A stretch of 52,920 nucleotides of DNA from Pelomyxa schiedti (lineage: Eukaryota; Protista; Evosea). Shown here in pieces: positions 13,429-30,962 of this stretch. Made by a program: the position numbers and the translations under genes. The notes under the pieces were generated by a model. It did not search any database and had not been told where the DNA came from. It saw nothing but the letters and a program-made list of their open reading frames with translations. How positions within the stretch are numbered: the stretch's first letter is position 1; each line of letters opens with the position of its first letter. The stretch spans positions 1-52,920 of the forward strand of contig JAHLWZ010000073.1 in assembly GCA_020536535.1 (NCBI GenBank), in the 5' to 3' direction.

Positions 13429-13500
13429 TGGCCCCGCTCAGAATCGAACTGAGATCAATAGAGCCAAAATCTCCCATACTAACCATTCTCCTACGGAGCC
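13429..13500 (-). tRNA. tRNA-Gln(TTG)-like gene, degenerate D and anticodon stems (possible pseudo-tRNA)
   Basis: Minus strand: GGCTCCG TA GGAG AATGGTTA GTAT G GGAGA TTTTGGC TCTAT TGAT CTCAG TTCGATT CTGAG CGGGGCC A. Acceptor and T arms pair fully and an oligo-T follows. Confidence 0.6.
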
Positions 13501-13599: not shown

Positions 13600-13689
13600 G
13601 CTCTGGTAGCTCAGTTGGTTAGAGCGCGGTACTTATAAGAACAGTATTGAGTGATGCTGAGGTCGTGGGTTCGATCCCCACCCGGAGCA
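13600..13689 (+). tRNA. tRNA-Ile-TAT: tRNA-Ile(TAT) with 16-nt intron (13638-13653)
   Basis: GCTCTGG/CCGGAGC acceptor stem, TAGCTCAGTTGGTTAGAGC A-box/D-arm, anticodon TAT at 13634-13636, intron at the canonical 37/38 position, GGTTCGATCC T-loop. Confidence 0.93.
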
Positions 13690-22103: not shown

Positions 22104-25100
22104 ATGGAGACTAAGATAGTGGTGCTTGACGGTGCTATGGGCACACAACTGGGTTCCTTGAATCTAACGGAGACAGACTACCGAGGTCAGTTTTTTTTAG
22201 TTTAGGGGTGGATGGCTATGTATGTAACCCTTTTCTGTGTTTTTCTAATTTAAAAAACAAAAAACAAAAAGGTGTTATGTTCAAGGACCATTGTTGTGAT
22301 TTGAAAGGCAATTTCGATGTTCTCAATTTGACTAGACCAGATATTGTGAAAATGTGCCATATGGTTGCTATTCCCTGCACTTGTTGAGTAGCCATTAATG
22401 AAATGGTAGAAATACCTCCTTGCTGGAGCAGACATAATCACTACAAACACGTTCAATAGCACACATGTTGCTCAAAAGCACTACAGTATCTCACCGGATG
22501 TGGCCCAATCAATGGCACATATGGGTGCCAAACTTGCTGTGGAGTGTGCACAATCTGTACGAAGTTCTGGAAAGGTTGCATTTGTGGCAGGATCCTTGGG
22601 ACCAACACCTGTGTCAGTTTCAATTGTTATGGGTCCAGATCAGCCATACAATCGCAGTGCTAGTATTGACCCCTTTTGAAAACTAGTTTCCTGAAATTTG
22701 CATTACACTCAGCTTTTGCACTGCTTGCTGACAGCTATCAAAGGGAAGCAGATGTGCTGATACAAGCAGGAGTAGATATTATTTTGATTGAAACAGTCTT
22801 TGATACTTTGAACTGCAAGGCTACTGTGTTCTAGTCTGGTGCCTTTTAATGTTCAAATGCAGGCAGCAATTTTTGGAGTAAAAAAGGCTTTTGCAAGTGC
22901 CTCCTTAGAACTTCCTCTTTGGGTTCCTTCATGTTCACTCTCTACTCATTGTTTGACTTCTCATCACTCATGAACTCAGATATCTGTGGCTCTTGACAGT
23001 GTATCTGGCCGCACAATGAGTGGCCAGAATATCCAAGCATTTTGGGCCAGTATCGAGCATTCCATGCCTTTTTGGTACTCCTCGCTTGCATGTGTTTGAA
23101 AAAATGACTGTGTAGTATTGGGTTGAACTGCTGCCTTCCCGCTAAGGAACTAGCACTGCATCTCAGAACCTTGTCAAGGATTGCTCCATGTTGTATTGGT
23201 GCTTATCCAAACACTGGGGAATCCTGTTTAGGGTACCTTGAAGTCAGTTACAACCTTGACACCTTACATTTTCTAGTAAAACCGAGTCCCCTGAGGAATT
23301 TAGCAATCTAATGGGGCACCTCTGTTGTGAAGGGTATAGTCGCTGATAGTCTTTTTAATCTCATTGATTTCAGGCTGCTCAATATTGTAGGAGGGTGCTG
23401 TGGTAGCTCTTTTATTCACATTTCTGAGCTTGCCAAAGTTAGTTTTAACTCAAGTCTGTTCGTACTTGTTGAAAATAATAGGCTGTCTCCACAATAACCC
23501 CACGTCATACACCACCAAGATCCAGTCATTTGTGGCTCAGTGGTTTGGATGTTACTCTACTTGACCATTCGTCATTCATAAAAATTGGTGAGCAGTGCAA
23601 TGTGTACGGATCCAGATTTTTCTCTCAGCTTATAAAGCAGAATAAATTCGAGGTAAATAGACCATGTTTAACTGTGCTGATTTTTACCCCTATTTTAGGA
23701 GGCGGCCTGTGTTGCCCGGAGCCAAATTCAGTCTGGGGCTGAAATGATTGACATAAACACAGATGATGCCCTATCTGATAGTGTTGGGAAAATGAGTGCT
23801 TTTATTAATCAGCTTTCCTCTGATCCCGCCATTGCAAAGGTTTGCGCTTTTTCCTATTCTATTCTGCTCAATTTGTAAACTACTAGTACCCCTTTGTAAT
23901 TGATTCAGCTGATATAGCGGTAGTAGAAGCAGGGTTGCAACGCATTCAAGGGAAAGGAATAGTTAACAGTCTCAGGTTGGCACATGAATTCGGGGGTAAG
24001 AACTAATAAAAGCAGTTTGAAGGATGGAGAGGACATCTTTTTACAAAAAGCTAAACTCTGCAGAGAATATGGTGCATCTATCATTGTGATGGCTGTGTGT
24101 TGATTCAAAATATTTACAAAACGCAAACAAAACAAAATCTAAATAAAAGTGTGACGAAACTGGACCGGCTGAAACAGCTGAAAGGAAAGTTGAGATTTGT
24201 AGACGATCTGCTAGGTTATTGGCCCACATTGGGGTTCCATTACACGAAATTATCTTCGACATGAATGTGATGACATTGGCAAGTGGAACTCGTATTTCCC
24301 TTTCCCTTCGTTCCACCCAAAATAATGGAACAAGGGACCAACAATGCTGTGGAATTTTTTGAGGCATTAAAAGGGCTCAAAAGAGAGTTTCCACTGAGCT
24401 ATGTACGTGTTAAAAGTGGCAAAAAAATTCTGAAGAAATAAGACAATAGGTGGTGTATCCAATATATCTTATCCCTTTCGGGCATTACCTTCACTGCGAC
24501 AAGCAATCACTTCTGTGTTTCTGGTGACCCAGTCAATTTTTCTCCCTAAGGGTATTAATAAAGCCACTCTTAGTTCCATGCAATAAAAGCTGGATTGGAT
24601 ATGGCAATCATGAATGTAACATCAGCTACTGACTTTAATTCGATTCCACAGGAGCAGAGACTCTTAATTGAAAAACTAATTTTTGACCAAAAGTAAGCTC
24701 CTTTGCAAATTTCCAAGCATTAATGATATTACTAGCAGCAGCGAAGATACTGCGGAAACGCTCATACACCATGCCCAACATCATAGTCCCTCACATCTTC
24801 CTATTTTACTGCAGTCACCATCCATCCCTGCATCTGACAGGTTTAAGGCCCGTTACCAGTTTTGGTGGAGCTGAGCATCAAAATAGGCTCACCTTAGCAA
24901 TAGCTAAAGGCGACATCACATGTCTTAAATCTGACTTGGAGGAAGCCCTCCAGCACAACACTGCCAGCCAAATTCTGGAAGGTCCTCTATTATCTGGGCT
25001 TGTGCAAGTGGGGAGTTTATTTGGAGATGGGGTAATCTTTCTGCCCCATCTGCTTCGGGCCTCAAGGTGACTTAAATTGATACAATAACACACCTATTAA

Positions 25101-27025
25101 TTGCGTTTATTCAGAGTTATGCACCAAGCTGTAGAAATTCTCAAAACTACCACAGCACAATTTGAGTTTCAGAAACCTCGTGGAACCATCATTTTAGCGA
25201 CGGTTAAAGGAGATGTGCACGATATTGGGAAGTGCATTGTAGGTACTGTTATGGCGTGCAGCAACTTCAAGGTTGTTCCTATTATTTAAAAAAAAGCTTT
25301 TAGTTTACAGTACAAGGTTGTAGATCTTGGAACTCAGTGTGAGGCTAGCACTATTGTGAGCCAGGCATGTGAACAGAAAGCAGATTTTATTGGTGTGTCG
25401 GGGTTAATATCACCGTCACTCTTCCAAATGGAATTACTTGCCCAAGAGCTCGCTCGAAGAAAGTTTCATGTGGGGGTCTTTGAACTTTGTGAGATATTCT
25501 AATGCCAACAAGATCCCTCTACTCATTGGTGGTGCCGCCACATCAGAGCTCCACACGGCCGTGAAGTTAGCACCTCTCTATGCACCTCTTATTCATATCA
25601 GAGATGCTTCATTATGCGTTCCTATTGTATATGCCTTAGAAGCCTCAACCCAACTAACAATCTATGAGGTGTCGACTCTCATGAATCCTCAGACACGACT
25701 ACATTTGTTAGATACTATCAAATCCAAGCAGCAGACACTACAGAAGGCATACGCGACTTCAAGAAATGTACCATTTTCTTATTCTTTGAGGTTTTTTTCA
25801 TGCGATTTTTTCAGTCACTAGAAGTTCTCCCTTTCCAACAAGCTAGGGAAGCAAAACTAATATTAGATTGGAGCCGGAGCCAACCAAGGATGCACTTTAC
25901 TGGAATTGAGGTAAAAATTTACTATATTGAAGCTTTATTTAGCCACATATATTCCAGATCATGAGAGATTATGATGTTTCACAAGTAAAGTCGAGAATCA
26001 ATTGGAACTTATTTTTTTCTTTCTTTTCCTTGAAGGGAACAGCACCAACAAATAAATATCCAGATATTTTATGTGACCAAAAGGTAAGAGGTTTTTTTTT
26101 TTGTAAATTCCTTAATTTCACCTGGAAATAGGTTGGGGGTGACGCTAGGGCTGTATTTGACTGTGCTCAGACTTTACTCCTGCGGTGTGAAGAACAAAAT
26201 ATCATTCCACTTCATGCAGTCTTGGGTTTGTTCCCTGCAAATAGCGTCGAAGAAGATGTCGAGGTTTGTGTTATTGAATCGGTTTTTATAATATCTATCA
26301 GATTTATGATGATGAGTCCCGTGCCAAACCAAAATGTGTTTTTCATGGTTTAAGACAACAAACACACAGCAATGAACATTGTTTGGCTCTTGGCGATTTT
26401 ATTGCTCCCAAAGGCTCCGGAATTCTGGACTACATAGGTTACCTACTACAATTCATTTCAGCAATTTCTCTGACTCACAGTTAAGGTGTCTTTGCCGCAA
26501 CAGCTGGTACCAAGATGGAAGCCCTTGTCACACAACTAAACTCAGAAGGAGATACCGAGAGTTCCCTGGTTGCTGAAGCACTTTCTCACCGATTGGTTAC
26601 TCTCCGATTTTCAGGCTTCTTTTTGATGTTTTTCAGGTAGAGGCTCTCATGGAGACTGTGCATCACAATTTCCTTCAGTATTGTAACCTACCAGTATGTT
26701 TACTCACAATCGGAGGTCAATTCATCACTTTCCACAGAAAGGCATAAGACCAGCGTTTGGCTTTCCTCAGCTTCCGGACCATAGTGAGAAAGAAGCCGCC
26801 TTAGCCCTGCTAGATGCTGAGCGAGCCATTGGTGTTCATCTGATCCCAGGGTCCTACGCGATGTCGCCTTGCGCATCCTCTTGTGGTATGTTTCTCCTTC
26901 ATCCAGAAGCGGAATACTTCGGTGTTGGGTGCATTGGAGAGGACCAGTTACAGCACTATGCCAAAAGAAAGGGAGTTGTTCCCTCTGCTCTAAAATCTGT
27001 TCTCGCATGTGCAGTAGTTGACTAG
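22104..27025 (+). CDS. MTR: Cobalamin-dependent methionine synthase (MetH type), many introns
   Basis: [10 protein letters not shown] start, GLNCC and GGCCG zinc-ligand motifs, pterin domain ([18 protein letters not shown]), B12 motif [21 protein letters not shown] and activation domain [17 protein letters not shown]...[10 protein letters not shown]. Stop at 27023-27025. Confidence 0.96.
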
Positions 27026-27224
27026 CAAGTCCAACTACAAGAAACAACAGAAAAGACTAGGGAAAAAAAACAAAGAATAATAAAGGCATATTTGTTATAT
27101 TTCACAAAGTACTTTGTGTCTATTCACATTCTTTGGTACAAAGTGGTAAACTTTTTTTTTCCACCAGTCCCCTTTCACAGGGAACCAGGCATAAAACCAC
27201 TTTCAGTCTGGTTCCAATTCCCAG

Positions 27225-28249
27225 TCAGTTTCTTGCTGTGGTGTTGTTGCTGTTAGAGCATCCACAAACAAGGCTTCCATCCCAGGTGTCAGCCACCTCC
27301 TTGTCCGTGCACTCATATAAACGGTTGGAGCGGGTCTCCCAGCGAACTCCAGCAGAATTCTCTTCCACTACTACATATTTGTACTCGAATCGCATTCCGC
27401 GTACTGGAAGGGTAATTTTCCAGATGTTTCCGTCGGTCCACTGCATCTTGTTGGTCTCGGTGATTTGCCAGGATCCAAGAAGCGTGTGGCTACCCACGAT
27501 GTGTAATTGTTGCCCGTATCTGAGATAGGAATTAGCCGAAATGAGAATGGGAATAGGAAGGAATTCTACCTTGCAACAAAGTGGATAGAGAAAGTGACCG
27601 AGAGCAGCTTCTTGCCATAGGCAATAAGCTGGTGCCTGAAGCCGATATTTGGGCAGATAATAGGGCGAGCTCGGTGCACCATTCTAAAAGCAGTGGCGAA
27701 ATCCACGCAGCGGGTGTACATAAGGTAAGCGATCACGATTGATGCGCTTCTCGAGACACCCATAACACAGTGGACAAGAACATTGCCCACTCTTCTGCCG
27801 GCATCAATAAATGCGTTTGTTTGGTTGAAGTACTGGGCGATATTCTGCTGCGCATCGTCCAGAATGCTATTGTTTGGGTTATTACTTGAACGAAACCTTA
27901 TTCTTATCATTATGAATAATATAAAAGAGAAAAGTAGATACAGAATGTAAAAAACTTACTCTACGACTAGACAATTGACGTTTGGCGGGAAGAGTCTCTT
28001 GTACTGCACGAAATCAGGTACGAGAGTGACAGTGAGAACGTGAGTGATGTTGAGTCGTGTTATGGTCTTCTTGTTATACGCGTCCTTCTCGTCGCCGAGG
28101 TAGAGGTGGTCCATAATAAGGTCGGGAGCAGCTCTTGGGGCGTAATTAGTGCTCGAGGGACCCGAGGTGTGTCCACCACAGGGAACTGCAGCAGGCGAGA
28201 AGTAATTGCCGCTGTTGGGTGCAACATATTCGCATACTTTGGCTTCCAT
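27225..28249 (-). CDS. Dual-specificity phosphatase fused to C-terminal CBM20 starch/glycogen-binding module
   Basis: Three exons, two GT-AG introns. DSP: IMDHLYLGD, ILDDAQQNI, VLVHCVMGVSRSASIVIAYLM, CPNIGFRHQL. CBM20: VTFSIHFVAR|YGQQLHIVGSHTLLGSW, MQWTDGNIWKITL, FEYKYVV, WETRSNR, DTW. Confidence 0.9.
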
Positions 28250-28915: not shown

Positions 28916-30962
28916 ATGGATCAATTGCGTCAGGCTCTTACCTGTCCTGTATGTCTCGGCGACTACGCGTCGGAGGGACCCAAGGAGCCTCGCCTGCTTA
29001 CAGGGTGCTCGCACTCCCTGTGTAGCGAGTGCCTCGCCACCCTTTTATCCGTCGCTTCTGCTTCTGCTTCAGCAGCTGTATCCTCCTGTCACACCACCAC
29101 TAGTACTAGTGCCAGGGGTGTTGGTGTTGTGTGCCCCTTGGATAGGGTGGTGTCTGTGGCGAATCCAGCTTTGGGAGTGGACCAGGTTGGCGGTTGGTTC
29201 CTGGTCACATACATTCGCTTCGGGCCTTTTTTCTTTCTTTCTTTCTCTTTTTCTTTTTCTTATTATTAACAATATTATTATCATTGGAGCTTATTGCCTC
29301 GCAATTTCCTACCAGTTCAAAAAAAACTACGCTCTGCTCGATGTAATCAATACACTGTCAATGCTACCAAAAAGCCCTGTTGCAACGACCAGTGCCTCTA
29401 CTGCTGCCTCCAAGTCTTCAACTGTGTCAAGTCCATGTGCACAGGGCGAGCCCAACTCTGCCCGTATGTCTCTCGTTATATCAAATTAGGCCTCAATTTA
29501 TTGCCCCTCTCCCAGATTCTTATGCTTTATATGCATGGGGTTACAATAGACATGGCCAAGTTGGAGCTGGCGATTTGGTTGACAAAAAACAGCCTGTTCA
29601 TGTCACCTCCCTACCACTACTATCAGCACGTTCATCGATTTCTGCGGGGGGAGGCCACAGCGCCCTACTACTAGGTTATTAGCTGTACTTAGTTACTTGC
29701 AATAGCACGCTTACATCCACACAGAGAATGGAGACGGCTACCTCTGGGGTCGAAACATGAAAGGTGAAGTTGGTTACCGAGAAACTGAAGGAAGACCGAA
29801 TATGACACCCGTTATTCCCACTCTGCCAACACGAGTCAGAATGACTATGTTATGCTGCGGAGCACACCACACGATTGCAGCTATTCAGGGATCATCTGAT
29901 CTGCTCGTATGGGGAGACAACACGCATGGGCAACTTGGCCTTGGCAAACCATTCGAGCCTCGATTTTCTCCTGTTTTCCTTTCTATGAGTTTATATATAG
30001 GTCGTTCCGACACAATAGCTAGTCTGAGCGCCGGCTGCTACCACTCTGTTGCAGTACTTGGTATGATTTGAATATGAGTATCCGATAGCTAACAGCAATT
30101 TTGAAAGGAAACGGTTCTATTTTTGTATGGGGTAGGAACCACAACAACCAAATTGGGTCGCCCCTCAGAGATCAGGAAGGAATGAAATCCACACCTACTC
30201 TCCTGGATGCACCTGGAATTTCATTCCGCAGTGTGGCATGTGGATGCCGACATACTGTTGGATTAACAGGTAGCAGCACTAACATGCTACAGTTTAGAGC
30301 TTGATAAGCATATTAAGATATCTCCAAAAAAACAAAAAAAAAGTGCAAGGAGAGGTTGTCACGTGGGGAGGAAACCGTTGTGGAGAACTTGGAAGGCCTA
30401 CATCAGAAGCTACATCATCTGTTCCAAAGGCACTGTCTTTACCTGGTCCTGTGAGGTCCATTCAATGTGGATGTCATCACACAATTGCACTTCTTGGTTT
30501 GTACATAAATTTGCTCTTCGAAATCTAATATTAAATGAACAGAGTCTGGCATTGTTATGGGGTGGGGATCCAACAGATTAGGCGAAACTGGGCGAACAAA
30601 CGTTCGCCGGCACAACCCTGTTCCGACCCCCGTTTTTGATCACACATTTCTTCACAGAAAAGTAACCACAATTGCCTGCGGTGGATACCACACCTGCTTC
30701 ATACTTGGTTTCTTCCCTCCTTTTTCCTCTTACCTCTGTTTTCCTCCCCCACCACTACATAAATACTAGTACTCCTTATCTCCTTTACTTGAATTAACCC
30801 ATTTCCACAGACACCGGAACCTTGTGGTACATTGGGTCAGTTGGAGCCCCAATTGCCGCGCCTGGCGTACCTGTTTCTGTGAACTTCCCTGTGCGTGACT
30901 ACGAAGTGATAGCAGTCTGTTGTGGCTGGAGTCACACCATTGCACTCTTGGAATTTCCTTGA
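28916..30962 (+). CDS. RING-finger plus RCC1-repeat protein (candidate E3 ligase)
   Basis: CPVC...CSHSLCSEC...CPLD RING followed by KKNYALL. About 6-7 RCC1 blades (YAWGYNRHGQVG, ISAGGGHS, VWGDNTHGQLG, VACGCRHT, WGGNRCGELG, IACGGYHT, VCCGWSHT). TGA at 30960-30962. Confidence 0.88.

Follow-up and report, generated by a model that had tools for sequence, protein, structure and literature searches.

A dual-specificity phosphatase joined to a C-terminal CBM20 module in Pelomyxa schiedti

Introduction

Carbohydrate-bound dual-specificity phosphatases (DSPs) have been described in two builds: laforin, in which a CBM20 precedes the phosphatase (CBM20-DSP), and plant SEX4/LSF1, in which the phosphatase precedes a CBM48 (DSP-CBM48). 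Loss of laforin leads to Lafora disease, and recent literature (PMC12834914) still calls it the sole known glycogen phosphatase. A 2009 survey of 122 protozoan genomes for proteins that contain both a CBM and a phosphatase found laforin and SEX4 orthologs only; at the time of that survey, Entamoeba was the only sequenced representative of the Archamoebae.

In this work, we analyzed a phosphatase gene of the anaerobic amoeba Pelomyxa schiedti that is located in a window of 52,920 nucleotides (the whole stretch of contig JAHLWZ010000073.1 under study, assembly GCA_020536535.1). The family to which this gene belongs represents a natural third construction, in which a protein-type dual-specificity phosphatase (DUSP) is combined with a CBM20. 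The P. schiedti sequence is already in GenBank under a generic name, and both of its Pfam domains are precomputed in the protein collection that we searched. The DSP-CBM20 architecture itself is undescribed; our literature search found no paper on such proteins, and the Pelomyxa genome paper mentions neither glycogen nor DSP-CBM20 phosphatases.

Gene structure and transcript evidence

The GenBank protein P0161 (293 aa, "dual specificity protein phosphatase 1") corresponds to a three-exon gene on the minus strand (28249..27225 of JAHLWZ010000073.1; Table 1). Without any mismatch, its sequence is made up of the translations of the three exons and of the two codons at the junctions, D97 and R196. 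All full-length analyses were conducted on this protein, and the exons were also searched one by one. The motifs listed in the original prediction, which had been made from the DNA sequence by itself, all lie where it had placed them on the minus strand. For intron 1, the GenBank model takes the acceptor at 27867; use of another in-frame acceptor, at 27885, would lengthen the protein by six residues. Codon D97 is split by this intron, with its first two bases at the end of exon 1. An in-frame TAG is present inside intron 2 (27566-27568), such that retention of this intron would truncate the protein.

Both of the Pfam domains expected in a single protein were found in P0161, namely, DSPc (E 3.8e-31) and CBM_20 (E 7e-16), with a gap of only three residues between them. 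When searched alone, exon 2 matched DSPc (profile positions 49-132 of 133, E 3e-27) and exon 3 matched CBM_20 (profile positions 14-90 of 97, E 2e-14). Exon 1 alone had no significant Pfam match, as it encodes only the initial half of the DSP, which is too weak by itself. The AYLM motif of the phosphatase is encoded in exon 2, and exon 3 carries Y197, W213, W223, W229, K243, W256, E257, and N261. The first strand of the CBM20 is located at the end of exon 2; therefore, this domain crosses the exon 2/3 junction.

Table 1. Features of the phosphatase gene and its neighbors. Coordinates are window positions; residues are those of P0161.
Feature	Coordinates	Strand	Residues	Remarks
Exon 1	27960..28249	-	1-96	ATG at 28249; disordered N-terminus (residues 1-~38) and first DSP half
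Intron 1	27867..27959	-		93 nt; GTAAGT donor at 27959; GT-AG
Exon 2	27570..27866	-		second DSP half, 3-residue linker, first CBM20 beta-strand
Intron 2	27520..27569	-		50 nt; GT..AG
Exon 3	27225..27519	-		remaining CBM20, short disordered tail; TGA at 27225-27227
DSPc catalytic domain	27611..28105	-	49-182	split by intron 1
CBM20 starch/glycogen-binding domain	27303..27601	-	186-268	split by intron 2
ILDDAQQNI			98-106	
General acid	27857-27859	-	D100	exon 2
P-loop HCVMGVSRS	27746-27772	-	129-137	exon 2; Cys130 at 27767-27769
LGSW			210-213	
MQWTDGNIW			221-229	
FEYKY			240-244	
WETRSNR			256-262	
RING finger + RCC1 repeats (beta-propeller)	28916-30962	+		514 aa; divergent neighbor
Cobalamin-dependent methionine synthase MetH	22104-27025	+		1142 aa; all five Pfam domains
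tRNA gene	13429-13500	-		divergent pair, 100 bases apart
tRNA gene	13600-13689	+		divergent pair; 90 nt, probably intron-containing

Transcript evidence was obtained from contigs of four single-cell RNA-seq runs, all from one study and labeled 'protist metagenome'. The exon 2-3 junction (AAG/ATAC), which the original prediction had singled out for confirmation, is present in the RNA contig X3; this contig covers 27570-27795 and continues into 17 letters that match window positions 27503-27519 exactly and uniquely, so the junction is seen in a single contig with a 17-letter overhang. The contig X2 stops at 27866, which is precisely where exon 2 is predicted to begin. Two other contigs run into intron sequence: X1 (27187-27903) follows the genomic sequence without a break through all of intron 2 and then enters intron 1, and X4 also extends into intron 1. 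Both represent either unspliced RNA or contaminating genomic DNA. If X1 reflects retention of intron 2, translation would stop at the TAG in this intron and give a product without the CBM. The transcript evidence for splicing is positive but thin, and it is supported by homologs that have the same continuous DSP-CBM20 architecture, including intronless metagenome genes and transcriptome open reading frames of Mastigella eilhardi. The fusion is genuine, and it is both spliced and conserved.

The gene upstream of the phosphatase start codon, at a distance of 666 bases, encodes a protein with a RING finger and RCC1 repeats. Malin, the partner of laforin, combines a RING finger with an NHL propeller, and this neighbor was considered as a malin-like partner and rejected. 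The adjacency is probably coincidental because the neighbors of the genes for the two closest paralogs (P0162 and P0013) are unrelated to it. On the other side, the gene for MetH is convergent with the phosphatase gene, and 200 bases separate their 3' ends.

The phosphatase domain is of the protein DUSP type

Comparisons with solved structures, fold similarity, phylogeny, and the active-site loop all place the DSP of P0161 with the generic MKPs and atypical DUSPs rather than with the laforin type, as the original prediction had proposed. Its 60 best sequence matches among solved structures are MKPs and atypical DUSPs (from 1.8e-24 for DUSP10 to 7e-12). These matches include DUSP10, DUSP19, DUSP16, DUSP8, DUSP9, DUSP22, DUSP26, DUSP14, and VHR, of which DUSP10, DUSP19, and DUSP16 are the best; laforin, SEX4, and LSF2 are absent from these best 60 PDB matches. 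As controls, two Porphyridium proteins with the CBM20-then-DSP order (P0125 and P0089) found LSF2, SEX4, LSF1, and laforin as their top solved matches. The identity to the catalytic domains of MKPs and atypical DUSPs is 30-37%, with an rmsd of 1.3-1.5 Å over approximately 142 residues.

An AlphaFold2 model that was built on the family alignment has a mean pLDDT of 84.5 and a pTM of 0.77. Residues 40-280 are mostly above a pLDDT of 90 and residues 1-35 are below 50; the ordered part is approximately 250 residues long. In a fold search of this model against 48,161 PDB representatives, the best matches were MKP-2 (Z 24.7; rmsd 1.3 Å, 142 residues), Slingshot-2 (SSH2; Z 24.4), and DUSP5 (Z 24.4). 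The Z-scores of the MKP-type structures (MKP-2, DUSP5, and MKP-5) are 24-25, compared with 13.2-15.2 for laforin, LSF2, and SEX4. The individual values are 15.2 for laforin, 14.5 for LSF2, and 13.5 for SEX4 (3nme), the last of which superposes over 145 of 290 residues, on the DSP only. A SEX4-like two-domain geometry was considered and rejected, and no solved chain aligned over both domains. An LRR-DSP protein of Entamoeba histolytica also provides a close fold match with its phosphatase domain (PDB 3emu, Z 21.5), and LRR-DSP (MkpA-like) proteins of Dictyostelium were found by word search. Amoebozoa seem to attach many differing modules to such DSPs.

For phylogenetic placement, 70 DSP domains were analyzed by maximum likelihood, in a quick tree search with SH-aLRT support only. 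Generic DSPs were thinned to below 55% identity, and fragments and cluster duplicates were omitted. The nine DSPs with the laforin order are placed on their own branch (length 1.52, support 99%); this laforin-type set consists solely of CBM20-then-DSP proteins, for which the best solved matches are LSF2, SEX4, LSF1, and laforin. The DSP-CBM20 family is nested within the generic DSPs: 14 of its 15 sampled members cluster together (88%), and all 15 cluster when two plain DSPs are included (92%). The DSP-only phylogeny that had been suggested as a check thus places the P0161 domain outside the laforin-order clade, as delimited by the nine CBM20-then-DSP proteins. Taken with the Porphyridium controls, the tree supports an assembly of this fusion that was independent of laforin and SEX4.

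The P-loop shows the same division. Glucan phosphatases reportedly carry the signature C-(polar)-A-G-(aliphatic)-G-R, which is said to have been set out by Meekins et al. in 2015. This signature is absent from P0161 and from the family, and all nine of the CBM20-then-DSP proteins have HCTAG[MI]GRA. The extended motif of protein DUSPs, in which LVHC-x-x-G-x-SRS precedes AY[LVIM][MLI], occurs in every one of the 15 full-length family members. In P0161, the features of MKPs and atypical DUSPs are VLVHCVMGVSRSASIVIAYLM and the general acid D100 located approximately 30 residues upstream. The loop reads C-V-M-G-V-S-R in the window protein and C-[VH]-[WMYCA]-G-[MVI]-S-R across the family. A Trp within the P-loop, which is unusual for DUSPs, is found in most family members (HCVWGMSRS; P0005, P0013, P0008, P0055, P0021, P0006, P0160, and P0054). 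It is also found in two plain DSPs that cluster with the family (P0200 and P0232, one of which is from the fungus Trametes). The residue at this position is Met in the window copy, Tyr in P0162, and Ala in the metagenome subclade.

No Pfam domain was found before residue 49 of P0161, and the protein has no rhodanese or MAPK-binding domain. The N-terminus contains no basic cluster or KIM-like motif, and its residues 1-35 are modeled as disordered.

The CBM20 module retains both sugar-binding sites

The best solved sequence matches of the CBM20 are the starch-binding domain (SBD) of Aspergillus niger glucoamylase (E 1.5e-9) and the CBM20 of human STBD1 (E 2.7e-6), the latter with 33% identity over 91 aligned residues; laforin is absent from the PDB sequence matches of this domain. 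The fold matches are similar, namely, the glucoamylase SBD (Z 13.3), STBD1 with maltotetraose (Z 12.8), and the beta-amylase SBD (Z 12.6). The module is a CBM20 rather than a CBM48, which matched exon 3 only at E 0.003, compared with E 7e-16 for CBM_20 on P0161.

The sugar contacts of the A. niger domain are W543, K578, W590, E591, and N595 at site 1 and Y527, Y556, and W563 at site 2. In an alignment to 1ac0, site 1 is represented in P0161 by W213, K243, W256, E257, and N261, and site 2 by Y197, W223, and W229. The single change is from Tyr to Trp at the position of Y556. The impression from the raw sequence that the Trp/Lys contact residues were kept therefore holds for both sites, and these sites are conserved across the family.

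A small family in Archamoebae and environmental sequences

The CBM20 exon was searched exhaustively against 1.84 billion representative proteins, which resulted in 904 matches, and exons 1 and 2 were then compared by local phmmer with the best 150 of these. Among those best 150 of 904 matches, the DSP precedes the CBM20 in 11, and nine have the laforin order, with one or more CBM20s before the DSP; more distant DSP-CBM20 proteins may occur elsewhere. The four top-scoring CBM20 matches (P0001-P0004, from a green alga, Epulopiscium, and rock fungi) were rejected as relatives of interest; they are multi-repeat CBM20 proteins with repeat-inflated scores. A feature search of the ESM Atlas with exon 3 returned generic CBM20 clusters only.

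Further members were collected by a word search with the family alignment, in which scores drop to plain DSPs beneath the family members. The family includes seven paralogs in P. schiedti (P0161, P0162, P0013, P0008, P0021, P0006, and P0160), such that the window gene is no singleton. It further includes three transcriptome proteins of M. eilhardi and about seven metagenome clusters (P0005, P0055, P0073, P0163, P0164, P0165, and P0172). The word search found no named Entamoeba or Mastigamoeba protein, and the Dictyostelium proteins found were DSP-only, none with a CBM20. One subclade (P0165, P0073, P0163, and P0164) is from ENA, Logan, and JGI environmental assemblies, and based on it the family may extend further than Pelomyxa and Mastigella. 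The gene for P0165 is intronless in each of the three loci found (L004 10001-10837, L005 1256-2092, and L006 635-1471).

The order of DSP then CBM20 described for the window gene extends to the family: all 18 aligned members contain both Pfam domains in this order. Across the family, the catalytic positions D100, H129, C130, G133, S135, R136, and S137 show little or no variation. The same is true across the 18 members for the CBM20 positions W213, W223, W229, Y242, K243, W256, E257, N261, and R262. The concern that this domain order might already be a widespread, characterized family did not materialize, as the family is small, its annotation is generic, and we found no paper that describes it.

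Possible functions

Our preferred reading, held with moderate confidence, is that P0161 is a glycogen-tethered protein phosphatase of the DUSP type that is anchored via its CBM20. The C-terminal CBM20 would keep a DUSP-type Cys phosphatase permanently on glycogen or polyglucan particles, which would put the enzyme at the surface of the glycogen stores of the amoeba. There, the MKP-like active site may strip phosphate from particle-resident proteins, such as glycogen-metabolizing enzymes and kinases. The functional analog would be PP1 on its glycogen-targeting subunits, or AMPK on the CBM48 of its beta-subunit, and the seven P. schiedti paralogs may provide differing specificities or regulation. 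Based on the conservation of the catalytic triad (D100, C130, and R136) across the family, P0161 is predicted to be a catalytically competent DUSP. Its CBM20 is likewise predicted to be competent for sugar binding, and the model is a confident single chain in which the two domains are joined by three residues.

We favor a tethered protein phosphatase because all features of the catalytic domain are of the protein-DUSP type, and because an artificial fusion of the laforin CBM with VHR, a generic DSP, was active yet released no phosphate from amylopectin (PMC2064834). However, the domains of that construct were arranged in the reverse order, and its DSP was a different one. The sequence type also does not fix the substrate by itself. 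For example, PTPMT1 is a lipid phosphatase with an xSRS-type loop. Furthermore, the three-residue linker and the pTM of the model fit equally well with a SEX4-like integrated unit that engages glucan. The family has no recognizable protein-docking element (rhodanese or KIM), and the N-terminus is disordered. Pelomyxa has conspicuous large glycogen bodies, and a glucan phosphatase would make sense in such a glycogen-rich organism.

The main alternative, which we regard as possible but doubtful, is a third independent invention of a glucan (glycogen) phosphatase that has an MKP-type active site without the signature, with seven copies that manage the glycogen stores. The CBM20 would dock on glycogen or semi-crystalline polyglucan and feed phosphorylated chains to the adjacent DSP, which would remove glucose-bound phosphate as laforin and SEX4 do. 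The domain logic is that of both known types of glucan phosphatases, and the short linker, the confident modeling of the whole chain, and the retention in every member of the catalytic residues and of both CBM20 sites are consistent with it. The seven paralogs suggest a heavy investment in polyglucan handling, and the aromatic residue in the P-loop of most members and of two plain DSPs could contact sugar rings, although the window copy has Met instead of Trp at this position. However, the P-loop differs from the type common to all laforin/SEX4/LSF2-like proteins examined, the Z-scores of the DSP with MKPs exceed those with all solved glucan phosphatases by approximately 10 units, and the DSP is placed outside the glucan-phosphatase clade as represented by the nine CBM20-then-DSP proteins. 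The superposition of SEX4 on the DSP only argues that the arrangement of DSP and CBM is not SEX4-like. In addition, Amoebozoa are placed among the glycogen accumulators in a preprint, and the CBM-VHR fusion was inactive on amylopectin. The glucan-phosphatase activity implied by the name "reverse laforin" in the original prediction is therefore unsupported, given the different P-loop type and the inactive fusion, and a protein phosphatase targeted to glycogen, which we hold with moderate confidence, is better supported than the doubtful glucan phosphatase.

An improbable alternative is a glycogen sensor, in which the CBM20 acts as an allosteric or occupancy switch, as may be compared with the CBM48 of the AMPK beta-subunit, and the activity of the DUSP on soluble kinases (MAPKs) is set by the glycogen load. 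The nearest relatives of the DSP are indeed MAPK phosphatases, the tight domain packing (pTM 0.77) would let a ligand signal from the CBM20 reach the catalytic domain, and the paralogs could report to separate pathways. However, the N-terminus has neither a MAPK-docking domain nor a basic KIM-like motif, and the conservation of both CBM20 sites suggests avid binding to a polymer over a single regulatory site. The data at hand are equally compatible with plain localization. Finally, a gene-model artifact, in which the CBM20 exon lies outside the DSP transcript or translation stops at the intron 2 TAG to give a DSP-only product, would agree with the colinearity of X1 through intron 2 and the entry of X4 into intron 1 but is highly improbable, given that the spliced contig X3 connects 27570 to 27519 exactly, that the CBM20 straddles the junction with its first strand in exon 2, and that 17 other proteins have the identical contiguous architecture, some from intronless metagenome genes and some from the M. 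eilhardi transcriptome.

These readings differ in their implications. If the enzyme dephosphorylates glucan, the idea of a special active-site signature for this activity would be overturned, and convergence would have occurred for the third time. If it is not active on glucan, P0161 would be the first single-chain glycogen-anchored DUSP, and glycogen particles may be signaling platforms in Archamoebae.

Comparison with known systems

Laforin (EPM2A), with its red-algal and alveolate orthologs, resembles P0161 in having a CBM20 and a dual-specificity phosphatase in one small polypeptide, with the sugar-contact Trp/Lys residues kept. However, the domain order is opposite, and the laforin DSP clade, as represented in our tree by CBM20-then-DSP proteins, excludes the DSP of P0161, for which the fold Z-score is 15.2 with laforin compared with 24.7 with MKP-2. 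The P-loop of laforin is of the C-[TN]-A-G-x-G-R type, whereas that of P0161 is HCVMGVSRS, and the CBM20 of P0161 is nearer to those of glucoamylase and STBD1 than to that of laforin.

SEX4/LSF1 share the order of P0161, with the phosphatase first, the carbohydrate module second, and a tight join. The module is a CBM48 in these plant proteins and a CBM20 in P0161, the DSPs belong to different clades, and P0161 lacks a transit peptide and the SEX4-type C-terminal motif. The inter-domain geometry of the two proteins also differs, because SEX4 superposes on the DSP only.

The catalytic domain is most similar to those of MKPs and atypical DUSPs (DUSP10/MKP-5, DUSP4/MKP-2, DUSP5, DUSP19, DUSP14, DUSP22, and DUSP26), which share the VHCxxGxSRS...AYLM motif and the general-acid Asp. 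Unlike classical MKPs, P0161 has no N-terminal rhodanese/MAPK-binding domain, and its C-terminal CBM20 is found in none of the solved or described DUSPs of its type.

In terms of targeting, the closest parallels are PP1 with its CBM21 subunits, AMPK with the CBM48 of its beta-subunit, and STBD1 with its CBM20, in which a starch-binding-type module likewise puts a signaling enzyme or adaptor on glycogen. In contrast to these systems, P0161 has the catalytic and targeting parts in one polypeptide, and its phosphatase is a Cys-based DUSP, whereas PP1 is a PPP metallo-phosphatase.
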